A stretch of DNA of 13,917 nt from Paraphysomonas bandaiensis (GCA_965644295.1 CBFFRP010000560.1:1-13917); one strand, 5' to 3'. Numbered from the stretch's first letter, positions 2,744 through 13,917 are shown. Numbers and translations: made by a program. Notes: generated by a model from the letters alone, not told the origin.

Positions 2744-2848
2744 AAAATGTATTATCCTTTTCTAGGTGAAGAAGTACCGAATACAGATGTTAATATTGGC
2801 GAAACTACATATTATAGTATAATGTGTATTATTAGGGCAATAAATTAA
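2744..2848 (+). pseudogene. C-terminal remnant of a penton/minor-capsid-like gene interrupted by the LTR element
   Basis: The frame opening at the LTR boundary reads KMYYPFLGEEVPNTDVNIGETTYYSIMCIIRAIN*. It aligns by eye with the C-terminus of the next ORF (RLYAPDL...DTTYWCVSLLF). Confidence 0.6.
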
Positions 2849-2877
2849 TTTTATTTTCTATAATAATTATATATATA

Positions 2878-3354
2878 ATGGAAAATATGCACAGTTTTAC
2901 TTATACTATCTCTTCAGCTAATGCAACTTCAGGTAATGCCGAAGATTGCTATATAGATTTACGACCTTTACCATATAATTATGAGTATTATAATGTGCAA
3001 TGCACCGGCTTTATTATGAATTGTCAAAGCATGGACCAGGTAACAATGCCGAATTATGTGATATTAGTAGCAGATGATATGGCAGAAAACGGTTATTTTC
3101 AGGGTCTAGATTCTAATCAGTGTATAATATCTTATTTATTAACACATCAGACTGTATCACAAATGACTAGCGGCGAAGGTAGCATATTTAGGGTTAAAAA
3201 TATGCGACAACAAAGAAGGATAAGATTTAGGTTATATGCACCTGATTTAACACCATTAAGTGGCGTTGTAGATGATTCCGATACTACATATTGGTGTGTA
3301 TCACTGTTGTTTAGTCCGGTTATTACTGAACCGGCAACATTAGAGTTGAACTAA
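2878..3354 (+). CDS. Short single-jelly-roll, minor-capsid (penton)-like protein, 158 aa
   Basis: Beta-strand pattern. N-terminal TISSANA...DCYIDL parallels VLNSKTA...DCIFIL of the 245-aa penton. C-terminal RFRLY...YWCVSLLF parallels HVQLL...HWSLNLLL. Viral-type start context tatatataATG. Confidence 0.6.
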   Translation: MENMHSFTYTISSANATSGNAEDCYIDLRPLPYNYEYYNVQCTGFIMNCQSMDQVTMPNYVILVADDMAENGYFQGLDSNQCIISYLLTHQTVSQMTSGEGSIFRVKNMRQQRRIRFRLYAPDLTPLSGVVDDSDTTYWCVSLLFSPVITEPATLELN

Positions 3355-4437
3355 ATCTATATGGGTTTTCCAAAATATAGAACCTGAACCCACAGTTTGG
3401 AAATCGTTATATGTATGAATTTCAAAAGTCCAATTATCAGCAACATCATTTATAGTAAATATTAATGGTGCTAGAGTACAACCAACACAGCTAACACTTC
3501 CCCTATTCGCGTCCCATATACCAGGACCATAAAGGGTAGCTCTATCCAGTGTACCATTTTGCTTTACTAACACACGCGCTCTAATATCTGTCCATGATTT
3601 AATACCCATAATTTCAAATGAAACCTGTAACATATAACGCCCTGTATATTGAATATAACCGTTTACGTCAATCATATTTGAATCACCACCTGTAGGTGTT
3701 GTACTTAGCTCTGATGATGTCATATAATGACCGCCAGAGCTTGTTTGATAAGTGGTATTATATGCCATGGATGAAAAAAATGTTACTGGGCCGTCTATTT
3801 CTTCCCAGTAACATTGCTTTTTACTGGTCAGTGTGTCTAAGTTTGTCCTATCTGATGATGTAAAAGCTGTGGTTTGTATAGTGGTGTCTGGGAATTCTAT
3901 TTTTTGATAACAATTAAAGTGATCACAACGTATTTCATCTATTGCACCACCTGATACAGCTTTTAAAATTGTGTTGGTAGGATATGACCACTCATTAGCA
4001 TTGCGGCTTATATCGTCTAACAATGTACTGTAATCACTGCTAAACGCTGTAGCTTGTTCTGTATTATCTGGGAATTCTATCACGCCGTTCGTACCTCTAA
4101 TATCTAATCTACAATTGGTACCTAATAATCTTAACTCTGCGCCTGTACCTGTTATATTATATAAGCCATAATTTTTATTCATTAAAAAGTCACTCGTTAT
4201 GGTTAAATCATCATAACCACCACCAAGATATGATAAGGGTATTAATGTATGTTGTATGTTGGATATATCAACAGTATTATTATATATATCAGTCTGCATA
4301 TCAGTAATATCATTGGTATTAATCAATATATCAGCCGCGTTGTCATTTATAGCATTGGCATTTACACTTATATCAGATTGACACACACAGAGAGAGGGGG
4401 GGGGGTCTTCGACCCTAGCCGTGTTAACCGTGACCAT
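3340..4437 (-). CDS. Fibre/receptor-binding-like protein; N-terminus uncertain or truncated near 4380
   Basis: N-x-x-DI heptads (NANAIND NAADILI NTNDITD MQTDIYN NTVDISN), two IEFPDxTxQxTAF shaft repeats 180 nt apart (4080-4042, 3900-3862), and a beta-rich C-terminal head with TGRYMLQVSF. First ATG is at 4437. The 3' end overlaps the convergent 158-aa gene by 15 nt. Confidence 0.7.
   Translation of the reverse strand: MVTVNTARVEDPPPSLCVCQSDISVNANAINDNAADILINTNDITDMQTDIYNNTVDISNIQHTLIPLSYLGGGYDDLTITSDFLMNKNYGLYNITGTGAELRLLGTNCRLDIRGTNGVIEFPDNTEQATAFSSDYSTLLDDISRNANEWSYPTNTILKAVSGGAIDEIRCDHFNCYQKIEFPDTTIQTTAFTSSDRTNLDTLTSKKQCYWEEIDGPVTFFSSMAYNTTYQTSSGGHYMTSSELSTTPTGGDSNMIDVNGYIQYTGRYMLQVSFEIMGIKSWTDIRARVLVKQNGTLDRATLYGPGIWDANRGSVSCVGCTLAPLIFTINDVADNWTFEIHTYNDFQTVGSGSIFWKTHIDLVQL
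4381..4405 (+). repeat. Compound microsatellite (AC)4(AG)4(G)9; candidate element terminus or slippage tract
   Basis: ACACACACAGAGAGAGGGGGGGGGG lies exactly where the fibre heptad pattern stops. Confidence 0.8.
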
Positions 4438-4740
4438 AAAAACTATTAATTTATACTGACCCTTACCCCTATGGTATCGCTGTGTATCACGTACAAGTGC
4501 TTCCAATATTATACATTACATTTTTTTATACACTTTTTTACATAAAAAATGTCGTGTCACCTTTCACAATAAAAAATGCAAAAAAAATCTTATTTTCACA
4601 AATTTTGCAACAGTATACACTACATTTTTTACAACATTTTTCTTTAAAAAAAACTTTTTTCTAAAAAATAAATATCAGAAATAAATATTTTCAACAAAAA
4701 TGTCAAAAAAAATGCAATCAAAATAAAATAATACTATACA

Positions 4741-4817
4741 TATTAACCCCAGCGATCAACCGACCCTATCAACCAAACGATCAACCGACCCTATTAACCA
4801 AACGATATACCAACCCT
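4741..4817. repeat. About 3 tandem 25-bp repeats (iteron-like)
   Basis: CGATCAACCGACCCTAT(C/T)AACCAAA at 4753 and 4778, a diverged copy at 4803 and a partial copy at 4741. Confidence 0.9.
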
Positions 4818-4910
4818 GACTTAAACACCGAACAATTACAACAGATAGACGGAACAACAGACCTGTTTAACACTATATATAGACATGCCGTATTTCACTC
4901 CCTATTTTAT

Positions 4911-4959
4911 ATATGTAAGAATATAAAACAATTAAAAAAAAATATATAGTTATATTATA
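4911..4959 (+). promoter_or_regulatory. Duplicated upstream element, copy 1 (putative viral promoter)
   Basis: ATATGTAAGAATATAAAACAATTAAAAAAAAATATATAGTTATATTATA directly before ATG 4960. Near-identical to 5809-5859. Confidence 0.7.
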
Positions 4960-5391
4960 ATGTCAAAAGAATTAAAATATTTTCATTGTTGTAGTAATGT
5001 TGATTCCGAGCGTAACGGTAAGTACTACTACAAACATAAAAAGTACATTCATAATGATCCATTTGACTGTCTAAAACATAAGTTAAATAGGCCAGCTGAT
5101 GAAGTCAATGATATAATAAGCAAACGGTTTGAAAAGGGTTTTTTAAGTAGCAATTTTTTTACTTTTAGACCAGCAAACAATACACCTGAATGTTACGATT
5201 GGCATGAAAAATTTATTATTAAATCAGGTTTAAGAGAAAACGAAGGTGATGATGTTCAAGATGAATTTTATCTTAAAAATAAGTTTTGGGAATCAGTTGT
5301 TTATATCATTGAAAATGACGGCGATAAAGAGAAAATGGAAACGGATAAGTGGGTATATTCAATGAATGCTATTGATAAACTAACGTTTTAA
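4960..5391 (+). CDS. Viral hypothetical protein, 143 aa
   Basis: Clean ORF with AT-rich codon usage, preceded by the duplicated promoter-like element. Confidence 0.75.
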   Translation: MSKELKYFHCCSNVDSERNGKYYYKHKKYIHNDPFDCLKHKLNRPADEVNDIISKRFEKGFLSSNFFTFRPANNTPECYDWHEKFIIKSGLRENEGDDVQDEFYLKNKFWESVVYIIENDGDKEKMETDKWVYSMNAIDKLTF

Positions 5392-5430
5392 AAACATTAT
5401 AGAATTATTTTTTTGTAATGATACATTATA

Positions 5431-5760
5431 ATGTCAAAGGCCGAAAGTAATAAATTTTTTTTTATGGAAATGGAAGGTAAAATTTTTAGTGTTAAACGTG
5501 ATCACAAAACAAACGTACAGAACGAAATAGAACAAGGCAAAAAGGAAATGAACATTTTAATAGATAAACAGAATAGCATAAAAGAAGAATTATTAAAACT
5601 TAACAATAAAATAAGTGATAAAAAAATGTCTTTGTTAACAAAGAGGCAGCTATTAGAATTATACCGCGGCAAGAGACGCATACCGTGCTTGAATTTATTC
5701 AAAAAAAATGTTACCGATGTTTATATTGATGATGACACAGACAGCGACGAGGACTGTTAA
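5431..5760 (+). CDS. Small coiled-coil protein with acidic tail, 109 aa (paralog of 5860-6144)
   Basis: Heptad pattern. MEGKIFSVKRDH..VQNEI and LLTKRQLL match the next ORF. Start context attataATG. Confidence 0.78.
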   Translation: MSKAESNKFFFMEMEGKIFSVKRDHKTNVQNEIEQGKKEMNILIDKQNSIKEELLKLNNKISDKKMSLLTKRQLLELYRGKRRIPCLNLFKKNVTDVYIDDDTDSDEDC

Positions 5761-5808
5761 CAGCAATGAAACATTGACCATTAAATTATAATTTATTTCA
5801 ATTATTAC

Positions 5809-5859
5809 ATATGTAAAAATATAAAATAATTAAAAAAAAATATATAGTTATATATTATA
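5809..5859 (+). promoter_or_regulatory. Duplicated upstream element, copy 2
   Basis: Differs from 4911-4959 by 2 substitutions and a 2-nt insertion. Ends at ATG 5860. Confidence 0.7.
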
Positions 5860-6144
5860 ATGAGTGAGTATTTATTAAAGTTGAAAGGTGAAGTATACAG
5901 TATTAGAAAAACGCATATGCCTAAAATTCAGGAAGAGATAAGGAATTTAGACAGAGAAATAGAAGACATGAAAATTACATTATCAGAACTTCAGAAACAA
6001 AAGAAAGAGTTACAAGTAGAGCTATTAAATGAACGGCAATTAATCATATATGAAAATAAAGACGAAGATAAAAGGACTGAATTATTAAGAAAATATGATT
6101 TTCTACACGGTGAATATCGCAGTGATTCTGTAGGATGGAAATAA
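5860..6144 (+). CDS. Small coiled-coil protein, 94 aa (paralog of 5431-5760)
   Basis: LKGEVYSIRKTH..IQEEI and LLNERQLI motifs, with a heptad pattern. Confidence 0.78.
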   Translation: MSEYLLKLKGEVYSIRKTHMPKIQEEIRNLDREIEDMKITLSELQKQKKELQVELLNERQLIIYENKDEDKRTELLRKYDFLHGEYRSDSVGWK

Positions 6145-6320
6145 GGGATAAAAATCCCTAAATTTTCGGGGAAATTATCCCTTAGATATAAAATATCGCA
6201 GTGATTCTGTAGGATGGAAATAAAATATTATAAAAAAATGCAATTGATAAACTGATAAGGTAAATTAAGGGATAAAAACGCGATAATTGTTCGCGAAATT
6301 ATCCCTTAGATGTAAAATAT
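6113..6320. repeat. Interleaved repeats: exact 32-bp direct repeat (6113-6144, 6192-6223) and two 43-nt hairpins (6142-6184, 6266-6308)
   Basis: AATATCGCAGTGATTCTGTAGGATGGAAATAA occurs twice. TAAGGGATAA-N23-TTATCCCTTA occurs twice, each followed by GATRTAAAATAT. Confidence 0.92.
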
Positions 6321-6348
6321 ATAAATATATTATGTGATATACTTATAT

Positions 6349-6564
6349 ATGGACGGCCTAGAATGGGAAATAAACTATGATAATTATGAATTTCCAAAGA
6401 AAAATATTATAGACTTAGACAAAGTAATTAACTTAGACACACCAAAATTAAACAGAAATAATAATATAGATACAGACATGTTGACTTATGATTTTGCAGA
6501 AATAAAAATATCTAATAATGTTAATGGAGAAAATACAGATTGTTCTAAACAGCAAGACAGCTAA
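6349..6564 (+). CDS. Small acidic/Asn-rich viral hypothetical protein, 71 aa
   Basis: ATG at 6349 in tatatATG context (MDGLEWEINYD...). Overlaps the start of the penton gene. Confidence 0.5.
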   Translation: MDGLEWEINYDNYEFPKKNIIDLDKVINLDTPKLNRNNNIDTDMLTYDFAEIKISNNVNGENTDCSKQQDS

Positions 6565-7255
6565 TCAATACCTAAATAATAAAACTACTGATTGTATTTT
6601 TATATTACCAAAGATAGATGTTAAACGACGTCATAAAGCCTATATATCAGTAATTGATGCCTCTATCCCATACTCTTTTTATAATGTTAATTCAACTAAT
6701 AACACACTAAATTATACCTTAAATAGTATTCCATATTCACTTACAATTACAAAAGCCAATTATAATATTAGAACTTTAATAAGTTTTTTACAGTCCAATT
6801 TAGAGCCAGGATTTACAATAACTTATAACTCATCAACTAATAAATTACAATTTACCCATAGTACTTATGATTTTTCTTTTTCAAATACTTCAACCTGTTT
6901 TGAATTATTAGGATTTGAAGATAATACAACCTATTATTCAGATTCATTAATATTATTATCAACAATTGGTATAAATTTATTTACAGTAAGAAACGTTTTA
7001 ATAGCATCGTCAAATTTTGTTTTAAATAATATAAATAGTGCCACACCTAATAAAGCCTCTATTATTACCTCTGTCCCTGTTGATGTTAATGCAGGATCCA
7101 TTATTAATTATAAAAACATTAATAATATTAAGAGCTTAGTACATGATATACATAATATAAATACTTTACATGTCCAATTATTAGACCAAGACGCAGATAT
7201 ATTAGAATTAAACGGTTTACATTGGTCTTTAAATTTATTATTAACTATTGAATAA
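6518..7255 (+). CDS. Minor capsid protein (penton), PLV type; start may be ATG 6524
   Basis: Typical PLV/Polinton penton pattern: I.LNS..A, ASIPYSFYNVNSTNN, NYN..TL...L, LLGF, IITSVPV, INY.N, LLDQD...LELNG.HWSL.L. Lies two genes upstream of the MCP. Confidence 0.82.
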   Translation: MLMEKIQIVLNSKTANQYLNNKTTDCIFILPKIDVKRRHKAYISVIDASIPYSFYNVNSTNNTLNYTLNSIPYSLTITKANYNIRTLISFLQSNLEPGFTITYNSSTNKLQFTHSTYDFSFSNTSTCFELLGFEDNTTYYSDSLILLSTIGINLFTVRNVLIASSNFVLNNINSATPNKASIITSVPVDVNAGSIINYKNINNIKSLVHDIHNINTLHVQLLDQDADILELNGLHWSLNLLLTIE

Positions 7256-7285
7256 AAAATATTTCTCTCAATATAGTATATATAC

Positions 7286-7726
7286 ATGTCAAAACTAGGC
7301 AAAAAGCTAAATCGTAAATTTCGCAAACTAGGTCGTAAGGCCGATCACAGAATACATAAACTAGGACAAAAAACACACGACGTATTAGACAAGGTCCAAC
7401 ATGGAGTAAATAAAGGACTTGATAAATCAGCAAAGGCAATTGACGTAGCAGATAAAATATTAGGCGTCGGCGATAAAACTATACACGCTATTAATAAAGC
7501 AGGATTAAATACAATGCCCGTTGTTGGATCAGCATCTAGACTATTGGAAGCAGGATTACACGAAGGACATAAAGGAGTACATAAGCTACATAAGCTACAC
7601 AATAAAGCCGACAAACACAGTAAAAAAGCATTTAAAAAGGCTCATAACGCAGGTAATAAATTAGAAAAACACAACACAAGAAAAGCTTTAGCTAAGTTAA
7701 CACAAGATGACAGCACATTTATATAA
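7286..7726 (+). CDS. Basic His/Lys-rich amphipathic helical protein, 146 aa (putative core or membrane-lytic virion protein)
   Basis: 11-residue repeats KLGKKLNRKFR / KLGRKADHRIH / KLGQKTHDVLD. Located between penton and MCP, and shares an upstream motif with the MCP gene. Confidence 0.75.
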   Translation: MSKLGKKLNRKFRKLGRKADHRIHKLGQKTHDVLDKVQHGVNKGLDKSAKAIDVADKILGVGDKTIHAINKAGLNTMPVVGSASRLLEAGLHEGHKGVHKLHKLHNKADKHSKKAFKKAHNAGNKLEKHNTRKALAKLTQDDSTFI

Positions 7727-7774
7727 ATTATATTTTATTATACTATAAAAAATATTTATCTATTTATAGTATAT

Positions 7775-9133
7775 ATGTCAGGATTACCAAAAAACGTATT
7801 ATATACAAATAATATAAATTCAAGTTATGCGCGTAATTATCAGAATAATATAGCTCCACAAAATGGTTTGGGGCCATATGGTGCAGGAGAGACCATAATT
7901 ATTAATGTTCCTACCGGTCGTAATCTCGTAATGTCGGGTGCTGATTCACTTTTAAAATTATCATTGATTGCTACCACAGAAACATCTAACCCCGCGACTA
8001 CGTCAGACTTTGTTAGACTAGATAAGGCCGGTATTCATTCACTAATATCAAGAGTTCGTGTGTTTCATGGCTCTACTTTACTTTCAGATATTCAAAATTA
8101 TAATAATCTAGTCGGTGAGCTCATGGTTTTACAACAGTCCAGCGACTCTTTTATCAATAAGCATTCAATTTTAACGGGTACTGAAACTTTAGCCCCCATT
8201 GATGCAACCGCAAATGTTACCGATCACTTGACAGTGGGACAAAGTTTAAACGATCTTGTACAACTAGCGAATGGAGCCAGTACAGCTAAAAAATATTATA
8301 CAATTCCAATAGTGAATTTTTTAAGCTACAGTGATAAATATATTCCACTGTTCGCAATGACCGGCGCGCCTCTACGTCTAGAAATAACTCTGGTTAATAA
8401 TCCACTAGAGGGCATATGCTGCGATAAAACCATATCTTCAATAGCAGTTAATGATGTTGAATATATTTGTAATTTTATGGAGTTATCAGATGATGCAATG
8501 GGTACAATTAATAAGGCTTCAAATGGAGGACCTATAAAATGGGTTGTACAAGATTACAGAAATTATTCACATACTGGAAATATTGCCGCTAACGTTGAAC
8601 TTAGTGTTCCCGTACCTGCTAAATTTAACTCTTTGAGATCTCTCTTTTTCAGTATGCGTACTAAGCACGCTGGAGAAGTCACCTATTTCCCTCTGTCATC
8701 AAATCATTTCGGTCTAGAGTCATACAGTGTCCGACTAGGTAGTAAGACTGTACCAACTAAAGCACCCAGTTGTATTCCTGAATTTTTCGGCGAATTGGTC
8801 AGAGCTATTGGAAGCGTAAGCGATTTGAATCATGAGCCCTCTATTAATTCAATAAGTTATAGTTTACAAGATCCAGTAGCAAATGCTGAGGTAGCCGGTG
8901 ATATGACTAACCTTTCAACATCATCCAACTTTTACTTGGGTTTAGATCTAGAAAGTTACAGCAGCTCAGGCATGGAAACAGTATATCAGGGTTATAATTC
9001 TAGCACTGACGATATATTTTTTATGCCTCGTTTTAGCTCATCCGCTAGTACTGTGACCGCACGCATAGATACATACGCTTATTTTGATCAAGTCATTTTG
9101 ATTGAAAACGGTTTCGCAACATTGCAATATTAA
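7775..9133 (+). CDS. Major capsid protein (double jelly roll), PLV type, 452 aa
   Basis: Size, beta-rich pattern and PLV MCP-like motifs (LPK..LY, AR.Y...IAPQNG, GETIIINVP, SLISRVRVFHGS.LLSDI.NYN.L, KYIPL......LRLEI.L, SLRSLF, F.LGLDLE, terminal YFDQVILI.NG). Gene context agrees. Confidence 0.88.
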   Translation: MSGLPKNVLYTNNINSSYARNYQNNIAPQNGLGPYGAGETIIINVPTGRNLVMSGADSLLKLSLIATTETSNPATTSDFVRLDKAGIHSLISRVRVFHGSTLLSDIQNYNNLVGELMVLQQSSDSFINKHSILTGTETLAPIDATANVTDHLTVGQSLNDLVQLANGASTAKKYYTIPIVNFLSYSDKYIPLFAMTGAPLRLEITLVNNPLEGICCDKTISSIAVNDVEYICNFMELSDDAMGTINKASNGGPIKWVVQDYRNYSHTGNIAANVELSVPVPAKFNSLRSLFFSMRTKHAGEVTYFPLSSNHFGLESYSVRLGSKTVPTKAPSCIPEFFGELVRAIGSVSDLNHEPSINSISYSLQDPVANAEVAGDMTNLSTSSNFYLGLDLESYSSSGMETVYQGYNSSTDDIFFMPRFSSSASTVTARIDTYAYFDQVILIENGFATLQY

Positions 9134-9215
9134 ATTTATAAAAACCTTTAGATTTTTAAAAAAATAAAAAATTAAAAAATTTATTATTTAAAAAATAATA
9201 TATATTTGTATATTA

Positions 9216-10014
9216 ATGAGTACAAAAGAGAGTTTTGAAAAGTTTGATTTAGAACACCTTGATAACCTGACTTATGAACAGTCAAAAACTTACGTAACAA
9301 ATTATTTTTTCCCACTTACAAGCGGTGCACATGCATATAGAACAGGGCATAAAAAATTTAGCATTATGGAACACAAAAAAGTTAAAGAAACGTATTTTAA
9401 CAGAATGGATAAACGGATAGCAAAATATTATTTCACTGAATTTAAAGGGCTTCGTGAAATAGTTTATGAATTAGGCAAAGGTATATTCCCTGATAAAAAG
9501 AAATTAAATTTAGCCGCTCAGTTTGCACATGACTATAAACCATATGAAGACTTTGATGATGAGAGTAAGGAAGGTGTACAGGCGTTTTTATCATATATTA
9601 AAGAAATATTGGCATCCAATGATCAGGCACAATATGAATATTTATTGAAGTGGTTTGCAAACATGACAAAGGGTAATAAAAACGAATCCATTATATTTTT
9701 AAAAGGCCCTCAGGGTATAGGTAAATCAACCATATCCCTATTTATGAATACTTACGTACTTGGCCGTGACCTGTGTTTAGAGGCTGGCGCGGACGTATTG
9801 ACATCTAAATTTAATTCAGATCTAGGAGGTAAATTATTTGTATATTTTGAAGAACTAGAAAAACAAAGCAGGGCTGATTGGGACGCAATCAATACTAAAT
9901 TAAAACGATATACGACGAGCGACGTCTATATAATAAATCAAAAGCATGAGTCAACATATCAGGCTGCAAATATTAATAATTATTTAATTAATGCAAATTA
10001 CAGTTTAAACGAGG
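9216..10014 (+). pseudogene. SF3/D5-like helicase, interrupted by LTR insertion at 10015
   Basis: Walker A GPQGIGKS (9705-9728), Walker B LFVYFEE, motif C NYLINAN (~9978-9998). The ORF tail after ...SLNE (10015-10133) is read-through into LTR sequence, and the helicase C-terminal part is missing. Confidence 0.85.
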
Positions 10015-10396
10015 TGTTGTCATCCCCGTATAGGAGGTTGGCTGTCATTGGAGTGAAAGCTTGGTTTGAGAGTATACTGCTGTATATTGCACTATACTGT
10101 GGATGTATAGTATACAGGATATATACAGTGTAGACAGCCAGCTACAGTAGGGTAACGGTATACCATTATACGGTGTATGATGACAATACGGTGTAGGATA
10201 TGTACAGTCCAATATGTACAGTGGATTAGTATAGAGTAAGGGCATATATATATGTCCAAAGTGTAAGCTGTAGGTGTAGTCTGTGATAGAAGACAGATTA
10301 GAATGCTAGTCATTATTATCACAGATAACCTCTGATAAAACAAGTTAATAACACTATCATTACTATCAACTTGTGGCTTGTTATTGCCTTACAACA
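10015..10396 (+). repeat. Putative 5' LTR, 382 bp, TGTTGT...ACAACA
   Basis: Canonical TG..CA ends with a 6-bp terminal inverted repeat, starting exactly where helicase similarity and AT-richness end. TATATATA near 10245. Short internal repeats (ATACGGTGTA at 10168 and 10186; ATATGTACAGT at 10198 and 10212). The partner LTR is not in the window. Confidence 0.68.
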
Positions 10397-12519
10397 TTAA
10401 CTTGTTCTCGAGAGTATGTTATCTGAAGCATGTCGCTCCAGCAGTGTGGTTACGATGACCGGAAGAGCAGAGAGAGTATGTATGTATATGGAGTATAGGA
10501 GTGTTGTTTTTGAGTTTGAGGAGACTGTGGAAGAGGAATTGAAAAAGGCTTATATCACGGGTATTTGGAGAACACAGATCACCAGCCGTTTGCTCCTGTG
10601 GTGGCCTCTTGGAGTGTTTATCGAATAAGGAGGCCCTTGTGTACAAAATAATGACTATTCGAGTGGTTCAACGGCGTAATAGGAGTGTAACTAGTGCAAG
10701 TAATTCTTTGTTGGGGATTGGATTGACTTTTATGGTTTCTTCTGGGTTGATTGGTTTATAATGTACCAAGGTGGCATCAATATTCCTCCTGTTCTGGCTT
10801 TTCCGGGAACATTAGCCTCGCCTTCATTGGGCGGTGAGAAGTCAATGACAGAGATTGGAATGCGTGGAAAGTGGTGATCTTCGATACAGGATCTTACGTA
10901 TTATGATTTTTGCGAATGTCCGGTTGTTGTCTGTGATCGTCAAACATAGAGTACGATCAAGAGGGCGATGTTATAATTAGTGAAAAATATGAGTTAGATC
11001 CAGTGGAGTATCGACAGAGTGTATGCAGCGGTTTGTTGGGGTAAATAAGGGTCAGAATCAATAGGAGGATGCATGCATGATGGCCCTTGTGGATTCAGGA
11101 GCAAACAGAAGTGCTATCCTCAAATTGTTGCTGCTGTGTTGAGGTAGAGAGTATATTTGAGTGTGGGATCGGCATGGAGATTTGGTTATACGACAGCCGT
11201 ATATATTATTACGTAAGGCATATACATCAGTTGGATTATGTTGATATCAGAGCCTTAGTTGAGTGTGAATATAATGTTCAGGAGGGTTCAGTAGATGACT
11301 CGAGATATGTATCAGGTGTTGGCAATTTAGAAAATGGTGCTTGTTGCCAGGAGTTACTGTTATAATCCGTCAGTGATAGAGGAGGTGTATTTACATCAGA
11401 TGTTTCGCATGTTTGCTACTAGCTAAGGGCAACCTAATCTGTTGCATCGAACAGTTGTTTCCGGGATTCATATTGTGATAGTTGGACATATGATTGGATT
11501 GGATTATATATATATAATATATGTGTGTGGACGTGTCAAGAAGATATAAATGGGCGTCGTTGGTAAGAGAACACGAGGAGTCGGAAGATCTATATATTGG
11601 CTGCAGTTGTGTCAACTCGTGCGTTTCTATAAATAGATGGTCATGAGGTTAAGGTACTTAGTCTCGTTGCGAGAATTGTTGTAGAGCCGGCAGCTCATGA
11701 AGCATAGTTTTAAAAGCTTGCGGTATGGTCGATGCCAACAGTGGATAAAGGAGTACCGGTTGTTCTTGCGCATCAGTTTCATAAAAGCTTTTAGTGGAGA
11801 ATATACTCCGTATTATTGGGTAGCGGCCGGTGGTGTCAGTGGTATTGCATCACAGTAGCAGTTAAAATTTTGTGTTTGTACCGCATGCAGAGTTTGAATT
11901 TGGGTATAGGCTCAACTTGTGGTACAAAAAAAAAATTATATATACCGGGTCGAAAGGAAGTGGAAAGTTCTATGTGCATGGAGATGTGCGGGTGGTGAAG
12001 TTAGGAGTTGAAAATTATGTTAAATGAATGAAAGATTCAGGAGATGGTTCCTACGATTGATGAGAAATGGACCAGAGAGTTATAAATCAGTTCAAGGACT
12101 TCTGTGGGAACTGTTGAGTTGTGTGCGGCATCATGGTACTCTAACCATAAATAGATATGTTTGGTCAAGAGTTCAGGAGGGTGTATAGGCAATGGAAACA
12201 GTACACATGATCAGGAGGGTGTGCTACAGGAGAGCAGCATATATGTTACAGGGGTCTGGTTTGGTTGTGTCGTGCATGTGGCTATAAGAGTTTATTTAGA
12301 GATCGACAACCTATTCAAAGGTATATACACCCGCCGAGTGACAGCAACACGAGGGAAACCCGAGAGTTAAAATTAAGGTTATTTTTATTCAAGGACCTAG
12401 TAGGTATACAAAGCAGCAGAGCGTTTATTTCGTTTGGTTGGTTTCTGGGATTTGTACTGTTATTATTCGACTGCGTGAAGTTACGATTTCTTTTGAAAGA
12501 AAGAGTTATTATGTTGCGA

Positions 12520-13790
12520 ATGAGGTGTCAGCGTATCAAAGTTTTTTTTATTGGGAGAGACTGAATGATCAGGGTGAAAGTTTTGTCAGTGTGATCAGTT
12601 ATAGTTCTTCGTCGTTCTTCACTGTTTCAATGAATGCAAAAGAAGAGTTAATTCGGAATAAGTTGAAAAGTGTCTCAAACATATAACAGGGTATATGTTA
12701 CATGGTGAAGTAGAGTACATATATTTTGTTCTGCAATTTGTATGGATTTAGTTGATGATCTTAATAGATTGTGTGAGAATCTTTGAGACAAAGTAATTCG
12801 GATGTTCAGTTGTTCGTTATGAGTTATGTTCAAATATTGTGCTACAATTATAAAGGAAAGGAGTGATTGGTATTTCGACAATGCCGGTTCAGTGTTCGAC
12901 AGCTTGTGAATTCAAGGACCATGCAACATTATTTAATTCGTGCAGTGGTACAGTGTGTGTGTTTTCTTTTTTCCTCGAATGACCCGTTGTTATTTATATT
13001 CCAATGGTTCTTAAAGTTACGCATTCGTGATGGTTGTGTGTGATGTTACGAAGAATATTTGTTCAACAGTATCATATTATCAGGAGTGTTATTGTAGCGA
13101 TGACATTATTTGATCATAAATTTATTGGAGATTTCCTGACAGCAAGTTTCAATTTCGATGATGGTTATCGGCAGCAGTTAAATGAATGACAAATAATTGC
13201 ATCTGCATTCTCCATGTGAGTTTATAATGTTGACATTGTTGGGAGGAGTGTGATACTACTGTATACTCTTTCGAGAGTGTTATTTTCAAACAAATCCATC
13301 ATTACTGCGAAGGATATAATGTCGAAAGAGTTCAATGCATTGGTCGATAGTTTATTTCAGTATGAGTTGGTGATATTATGAAGGAGAACTTGGTCCTTAG
13401 GCACGAACAAGGATCAGAGCTGGTTATATATGGCAGTTCAGAAGGTCGACTACATGGTGATCATTTGTGTGAGTTAAAGTCCAATACTGAGAGATATTTG
13501 GTTTCGAAAATTGCTTGCGGGCTAGGCCTACTTGTGTGCAGTTGGAACCTACTCTAATTTTTGCGAATAATGCGTCGATGATTACTCTGGCGGAGGATTT
13601 TAGTGGAAATCATAAGAGGGTCAAGCATTATATTACAAGAGTAAATTTTTTAATTGAGCAGGTGCGTGAAGGAGTGATAAGGTTTCAACACGTGCCATCA
13701 GAATCAAATGTTGCTGATATTCTGACTAAACCTTTGGGTCCTGTTGACTTTCATCGCCTTCGGCCGTTGTTGCTTGGAATGAAGGAGTAA
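12520..13790 (+). pseudogene. pol: Decayed copia pol (RT remnants, better-preserved RNase H C-terminus)
   Basis: Clear copia RNase H tail: EPTLIFANNAS...HKRVKHY..RVNFL.EQV..G.I...HVPSESNVADILTKPL. A frameshifted WFRKLL lies at 13499. Weaker remnants occur in the expected order: NAKEELIRNK (12633), YCSDDII (13090, cf. YVDD), FNALVDSL (13331, cf. Y..LVGSL). Confidence 0.85.
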
Positions 13791-13917
13791 ACAGGGAAGA
13801 GAAATTGAAATTTATGACATATGCATGATGTGTAGAGTATTTCGTGATATTATAACTAATTATGGTGTTTTTCAGATACTAAATCCACGAGTATTCTCGT
13901 TATCGTTCTGTCTATAG

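Follow-up and report, generated by a model that had tools for sequence, protein, structure and literature searches.

A Ty1/copia Retrotransposon Family of Paraphysomonas bandaiensis with a Covarying Duplex at Its LTR Boundary, Predicted to Prime Reverse Transcription with Its Own RNA

Overall Features of the LTR Boundary

The window analyzed here is the whole stretch of 13,917 nucleotides (nt) from Paraphysomonas bandaiensis (GCA_965644295.1 CBFFRP010000560.1:1-13917), and it contains, on the plus strand, a Ty1/copia retrotransposon whose 5′ long terminal repeat (LTR) spans positions 10015–10396. This element probably starts its minus-strand DNA with its own RNA and not with a transfer RNA (tRNA), a mechanism that is predicted. 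The underlying duplex is observed directly: it is present, it lies at the LTR boundary, it covaries in eight families, and a non-autonomous derivative that has transposed retains it.

The duplex is formed by an LTR arm, AACAAGTTAAT (10339–10349), and a segment at the LTR end, ATTAACTTGTT (10396–10406), which are exact reverse complements over 11 nt. The initial annotation had described this pairing in place of a TGG-type site, and every base that it quoted was confirmed. No TGG occurs in the 34 nt from the LTR to the gag ATG. The primer-binding position is predicted at 10397–10406 (TTAACTTGTT), and the terminal A of the LTR at 10396 pairs too. The LTR arm is the candidate self-primer, its 3′ end being the would-be priming end, and the 46-nt loop that separates the arms (10350–10395) would template the short minus-strand strong-stop DNA. 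A perfect run of 11 nt between the LTR and the next 20 nt was matched in none of 1000 shuffles. Neumann et al. (2019) recognize a self-primer by an LTR complement of at least 10 bp starting 0–5 bp after the 5′ LTR (PMC6317226); in the window, the complement measures 11 nt at offset 0.

Pairing continues outward across bulges, with CTCT (10330–10333) facing AGAG (10411–10414) and CAGATAAC (10322–10329) facing GTTATCTG (10418–10425), so that the outer 5′ stem arms occupy 10322–10333 and the outer 3′ stem arms lie in the leader at 10411–10425. The minimum-energy fold of 10315–10432 is the hairpin drawn in the initial annotation, at −25.6 kcal/mol, whereas shuffled sequences gave −15.5 ± 3.1 kcal/mol (z = −3.3) and none of 200 was as good. 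The outer stem arms are retained in L056, an LTR relative at 81%. They were not seen in the distant relatives and are specific to the window family; within the window, the outer pairings are as first described. The motif AACTTGT is present twice, in U5 (10367–10373) and in the primer site (10399–10405), and the LTR arm could alternatively pair over 7 bp with the U5 copy; this alternative pairing has no counterpart in L078, one of the related families described below.

The boundaries of the LTR were established from the window's own 62.5-Mb genome, in which a search with positions 10010–10440 as the query gave 43 matches. Among more than 40 genomic copies, the similarity of solo and 3′ LTRs ends at query positions 5/6 and 387/388, i.e., 10014/15 and 10396/97 of the window. 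The LTR is therefore the 382-bp segment 10015–10396 (TGTTG...CAACA), the boundary at 10396 assumed at the outset is correct, and the duplex starts on the last LTR base. The primer-binding sequence is kept in all copies of the 5′ LTR, save for point changes in single copies. Two full copies, L031 (4718 bp) and L032 (5070 bp), have two such LTRs each, 5-bp target duplications (CTCAC and CTAAC, respectively), and the polypurine tract AGGAGGGTG. The hallmarks of Ty1/copia, namely TG...CA LTR ends, a 5-bp target duplication, and a polypurine tract, are thus all found, while the 3′ LTR of the window copy lies beyond the contig end. One of the point changes, in the copy on C129 (L032/L005), is a T-to-C substitution at the base equivalent to 10397, the first of the primer site; the resulting CTAAC equals the copy's own target duplication, which is probably a coincidence.

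Covariation of the Duplex among Related Families

An inverted repeat without function, arisen by chance or by hitch-hiking, would be hard to tell apart from a functional one within the host genome, since the genomic copies are too alike in this region (89–100%) to show covariation alone. Relatives were therefore sought in public data: public proteins were searched with the Pol sequence of L076, a Tara Oceans metagenome contig of the same family as the window element, and with the polyprotein of one relative, and the encoding metagenome contigs were retrieved. The duplex architecture of the window recurs, with other letters, in seven families (L078/L079, L080, L081, L083, L084, L085, and L087). 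Their Pol proteins are 41–54% identical to that of L076, or 61–63% identical to that of one of these relatives.

Each of the seven has a perfect Watson–Crick complement of 9–15 nt to its own LTR. Whereas the window pairs over 11 nt, the LTR arm ACAAGTTAAT pairs with the post-LTR sequence ATTAACTTGT over 10 nt in L078, AGCTGTAAGTTAAT with ATTAACTTACAGCT over 14 nt in L080, AGCTTTATAAGTTAA with TTAACTTATAAAGCT over 15 nt in L081, AAGTTATAAGTTAA with TTAACTTATAACTT over 14 nt in L083, AAGTTAAAAGTTAA with TTAACTTTTAACTT over 14 nt in L084, and AAGTTATAAGCTAA with TTAGCTTATAACTT over 14 nt in L085. In L087, AATTGTTAA and TTAACAATT form 9 pairs, followed by a 1-nt bulge and 5 further pairs. The duplex begins at the first post-LTR base in all eight families (offset 0/+1), with the terminal A of the LTR included in three, and the arm is located 27–46 nt, mostly 39–46 nt, upstream of the LTR end.

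Across the eight families, 79 of the 80 cells at offsets 1–10 are Watson–Crick pairs and none is a G-U pair. Compensatory changes on both sides occur at six offsets (4, 6, 7, 8, 9, and 10), as exemplified by the L083 and L084 pairs given above and by TTAGC with GCTAA in L085. When arms were swapped between families, none of 7363 permutations equaled the observed pairing, and the own arm is the best partner in every family but L078, whose arm nearly equals that of the window. For six of the seven relatives, 0–9 of 1000 shuffles equaled the perfect run. The initial annotation had asked for a test of covariation between the arms in different families, and its claim that the primer position is complementary to the LTR of the element itself, instead of to a tRNA, passed this test. 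Because independent families repeat the architecture with other sequences, and shuffles fail to reach the 11-nt run of the window, the cross-family comparison effectively refutes a chance origin, to which we assign a negligible probability.

A decayed relic, L075/L064, was considered as a counterexample, because its arm carries two mismatches although the 14-nt site is intact. As a short, decayed, single remnant beside host genes, in which the closing pair of the outer stem (C-G) has become U-A, it was set aside as uninformative. In a further relative, L086 (41% Pol identity), positions 28–195 contain three tandem units ending in CAGAGGGGTG, which resembles a polypurine tract and lies ahead of the LTR.

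The same comparison bears on a structural role. The stem could be an RNA hairpin similar to the retroviral U5-leader (U5-IR) structures, acting in packaging, dimerization, or translation and displaying the leader, with another primer binding elsewhere. Such a reading agrees with the stability and conservation of the stem, with the bulged stem of the window family, which exceeds a primer-sized duplex, and with the gag start only 10–35 nt downstream; moreover, the fungal GalEa copia elements carry a conserved hairpin of unknown role at the primer-site position (PMC5445492). Yet no other candidate primer site is found between the LTR and gag in any of the eight families. In addition, the duplex always starts from the first post-LTR base, a start required only by the geometry of priming, since there the primer 3′ end must define the LTR end. 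Finally, all duplexes are Watson–Crick despite their differing sequences, as expected of copying from a primer, and the lack of G-U intermediates fits templated rewriting better than selection for folding. For these three reasons, priming is favored, and a purely structural hairpin appears unlikely.

Primer-Binding Sequence and Host tRNAs

The host genome is rich in intact copia families, with frames of 1507–1817 amino acids (aa). Other copia representatives from six families (L067–L074, L071) have TGGTAGCG, TGGCAGCG, or TGGTAGCA directly after the LTR; the TGGTAGCG-type sites are ordinary initiator-tRNA sites. The best LTR complement in these families is 4–7 nt, inside the shuffle range. Within its host, the window family is thus unusual.

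Many Ty1/copia elements are primed by half-tRNAs, and the site might bind a half or an internal fragment of a host tRNA, or some other small host RNA, the LTR complement being incidental. As in the copia elements primed by half-tRNAs (Ty5, Drosophila copia, Osser, Bryco, Bianca, and FunCo1), the window site does not start with TGG. FunCo1 uses ATTAAGAGTCT against an internal part of tRNA-Lys, and this site starts with ATTAA, as does that of the window. Furthermore, the core ATTAACTT is near-invariant across families. However, the half-tRNA sites match the anticodon stem-loop of one host tRNA, whereas the window site matches its own LTR and changes with it. Past the core of 7–8 nt, the sites differ by family, each matching its own LTR, and L085 alters the core itself together with a compensating LTR change. 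Sites that vary by family and track their own LTRs cannot be accounted for by one host RNA common to all.

Searches of the genome point the same way. An exact match to the 14-nt complement of the site is present at 14 places, of which 11 belong to the family itself, one to a diverged copy (L047), and two to unrelated non-tRNA sequences. ARAGORN detected no tRNA at 17 one-mismatch sites or at the other loci examined (282 kb). By inspection, no reading of the complement yields an anticodon loop with U33. A host tRNA match, which the initial annotation had named among the findings that would refute it, was thus absent at the exact and one-mismatch sites examined; the Rfam tRNA search scored 63 of 2525 candidates, a coverage of the host tRNA set that counts in favor of this alternative. 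Overall, binding of a tRNA half or other small RNA is improbable.

A tRNA-Ile-like site in the leader motif GTTATC.GA was also considered. It was rejected because only a sister family, L077, reads as an anticodon loop and because GAU is not known as a cytosolic anticodon. In a public contig from run X1, the LTR is joined at 10377 to GGGCGACTAGCTCAATTGGTAGAGC..., which resembles the 5′ part of a tRNA gene. This junction may represent a truncated LTR adjoining a tRNA gene, and the tRNA-like sequence has no complementarity to the primer site.

Autonomous and Non-Autonomous Copies

The interior of the window copy is a degenerate, non-coding gag-pol remnant (10433–13560) with no frame longer than 99 aa; just upstream, an alignment with L030 and L012 places the equivalent of the autonomous partner's gag start codon at 10430–10432. 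Copies on other contigs (L031, L032, and L034) share this degenerate interior at 96–98% identity, and the decayed version has therefore itself transposed, forming a non-autonomous family. Its copies have LTR pairs of 99% identity and 5-bp target duplications.

The last 69 pol codons of the window (13581–13790) encode an intact C-terminal RNase H end of the autonomous type, including the stop codon, and are 100% identical at the protein level to copies on contigs C99, C375, and C399, which carry open frames of 763–1053 aa. The copies on C99 and C557 (L030 and L012) have an open gag, in which ATG TCG opens a frame of more than 500 aa, and their LTRs are 89–90% identical to that of the window. 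L076 encodes a Gag of 445 aa, 92% identical to that of the C99 copy, and a Pol of 1045 aa, the end of which is nearly identical to the window C-terminus. This Pol matches the copia reverse transcriptase (RT) family RVT_2 (PF07727, E = 7e-31), as do those of the relatives P0004 and P0012. Its RT occupies residues 568–799, with 567 aa before and 245 aa after it; weak matches to rve (residues 101–196, E = 0.16) and, C-terminally, to an RNase H-like domain were obtained. From these weak matches, the layout appears compatible with the copia order of protease, integrase, RT, and RNase H, in which the integrase precedes the RT. The assignment of this LTR to a copia pol, as initially proposed, is upheld by the shared Pol C-terminus and by the RT match of the autonomous partner.

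All three representatives of the autonomous partner (L030, L012, and L076) have the same LTR end and post-LTR sequence as the window. Autonomous and non-autonomous copies are almost identical over ~120 nt at the 3′ end of the LTR and over the initial ~35 nt of the leader, with a single substitution at 10417, whereas the rest of the interior aligns at 48% only (window versus the intact gag of L030). The U5 block ATCAACTTGTG.CTTG, located in the loop, is conserved even in the sister family L077, and the leader motif AGTA.GTTATC.GA is common to the autonomous, non-autonomous, and sister families. Selection in cis, which had been suggested from the preservation of the stem beside a ruined pol, is supported by a non-autonomous family that has transposed while keeping the 3′ part of the LTR and this stretch of leader.

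Three further observations concern the history of these copies. C-to-T hypermutation of the ruined pol, hinted at by a coding strand with 13% C, was rejected, as the partner is equally poor in C (15%) and the spectrum is mixed. The window copy is chimeric, being of the non-autonomous type up to ~13560–13622 and of the autonomous type from there (region ~13560–13917). In its 3′ part, it shows 100% protein identity to the C99 and C375 copies and near identity to L076 4600–4830, while other non-autonomous copies diverge from it after 13622. In L032, an array of ~129-nt units repeated in tandem at 3840–4660 separates the pol remnant from the 3′ LTR; the elements differ in size (4.7 kb versus 5.1 kb) because the length of this array differs between copies.

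Proposed Priming Mechanism

On the proposed mechanism, the LTR segment AACAAGUUAAU (10339–10349) of the genomic RNA would fold onto 10396–10406, and the element's RNase H would cut the RNA at the 3′ side of the segment. The RT would then extend the freed 3′ end over the ~46-nt loop, giving a short strong-stop DNA that would transfer to the 3′ LTR. On the plus strand, copying of the attached RNA primer would rewrite the primer-binding sequence as an exact complement of the LTR arm. Rewriting of this kind would account for perfect Watson–Crick duplexes without G-U pairs in all families. The outer bulged extension (10322–33 with 10411–25) might reflect occasional copying further into the primer RNA, although this is speculation. 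In its full form, in which a marine-protist copia clade (an apparent stramenopile host, with relatives from ocean metagenomes and metatranscriptomes) primes with an internal LTR segment of its own RNA and rewrites the site in each cycle, the proposal is put forward tentatively, at slightly less than even chances.

PolyA marine metatranscriptomes contain sequence from the element but none from the flank at 9600–9887, a pattern that agrees with transcription of the element but falls short of proof.

Several points weigh against self-priming. Cleavage, the identity of the primer, the transcription start, and rewriting of the site are what we infer. The public RNA runs consist of assembled contigs, whose ends at 10334 and 10363 are 30-nt (k−1) graph overlaps and not RNA ends. 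Three possible transcripts (L077, L081, and L082) start ~20–50 nt before the arm, or before the place where it would be expected; if such contig starts reflect the true RNA start, the primer segment is internal to the RNA, unlike that of Tf1, and the arm, which the initial annotation suggested as the element's own 5′ end, may thus lie inside the transcript. For the relatives, the ends of the LTRs were deduced from a common ...CAACA|TTAAC junction and from the LTR starts that follow a polypurine tract, rather than from a second complete LTR. Pairing alone does not explain why the core TTAACTT is near-invariant across families. L082 shows only a broken version of the complement (GTTAAT plus AGCT). 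The sister family L077 has ATTAATCTCTTATCG after the LTR and no complement to it within 96 nt upstream. L077 is a metatranscriptome contig with an exact 18-nt match to a single genomic copy (C127:202242), whose gag contains one stop; the family shows 53–55% Gag identity, and both ATCAACTTGTG in U5 and the motif AGTAGTTATCAGAG in the leader are preserved in it. The host tRNA search described above, with 63 of 2525 candidates scored, belongs to the same side of the balance.

Comparison with Known Self-Priming Elements

In Tf1, the duplex measures 11 nt, and the initial 11 bases of the mRNA serve as the primer. This mechanism, in which a 5′ stretch of the element's mRNA anneals to the primer site and, once cut, primes reverse transcription, was shown for Tf1 and proposed for Tj1 (PMC4600332). 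The window element resembles Tf1 and Tf2 of Schizosaccharomyces pombe and the Tf1/sushi group, Tj1 included (Ty3/gypsy), in the absence of a tRNA site and in the complementarity of its own LTR transcript to the post-LTR sequence (PMC4600332; PMC6317226). The size of the duplex is also similar, at 10–15 nt in the window clade. Yet the two belong to different superfamilies, the window element having a copia-type RT (PF07727) with the integrase probably before it. Another difference is present at the 5′ end: whereas the Tf1 primer is the end of the mRNA, the RNA of the window element may start 20–40 nt upstream of the arm.

The initial annotation held that nothing similar was known for Ty1/copia, which is too strong. 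Neumann et al. (2019), who cite an earlier proposal of self-priming for Houba and Osr1, predicted it in 89% of 203 copia elements of the plant TAR lineage (PMC6317226). The window element is like the TAR lineage, including Houba/Tos5 and Osr1, in being a Ty1/copia element with predicted self-priming and an LTR complement of the length and position used to define it there. TAR elements come from land plants, however, whereas the host here is apparently a marine stramenopile and the relatives come from aquatic metagenomes. Moreover, the TAR prediction rests on complementarity, to which the window clade adds covariation between families. Self-priming in the window clade may have originated independently of TAR.

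Fungal GalEa elements provide a further comparison. They are copia elements without a tRNA site, a conserved hairpin replaces the primer site exactly at its position, and the terminal A of the LTR is used, as in the window; no complement is found in their U5 or LTR (Donnart et al. 2017; PMC5445492). Unlike in the window element, where the partner is inside the LTR, the partner in GalEa lies downstream in the leader and the first motif is palindromic (PMC5445492).

To date, self-priming has been demonstrated only in Tf1-type gypsy elements, and in copia it has so far been a prediction for one plant lineage. A study of diatom copia elements (Maumus et al. 2009) does not mention primer sites, and our literature search found no paper tying self-priming to copia in diatoms, stramenopiles, or oomycetes. 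The window clade is thus probably the first documented copia clade of self-priming type outside land plants. If the mechanism is true and the clade is unrelated to plant TAR, it would add another independent origin of self-priming to that of the Tf1/sushi group. A known mechanism would be extended to a new host group, with nothing overturned. With its eight naturally occurring compensatory variants of the primer duplex, and with an autonomous element alongside a non-autonomous derivative that transposed recently, the clade makes the mechanism directly testable. It also provides a concrete annotation rule for copia elements that seem to lack a primer site.

Other Features of the Window

Within the LTR, a TATA-like run, CATATATATATATG (10245–10258), is a possible promoter element as read from the sequence. 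The AT-rich region to the left of the LTR (2744–10014) looks viral. An open reading frame (ORF) at 6518–7255 matches DUF5901, and another at 9216–10133 matches DUF5906 (E = 6e-15). The latter frame extends 119 nt into the LTR, indicating that the copia element truncated the end of the DUF5906 gene.

A comparison of the window at 9990–10440 with L023 (C419:3506–3925) showed that the flank upstream of the LTR is identical; contigs C419 and C560 therefore carry the same insertion, and they may be two haplotypes or a duplicated region. At the left end of the window, a direct repeat of 181 nt is present at 1–181 and 2563–2743, 2562 nt apart and 100% identical. The two copies may be the LTRs of another, unrelated small element.

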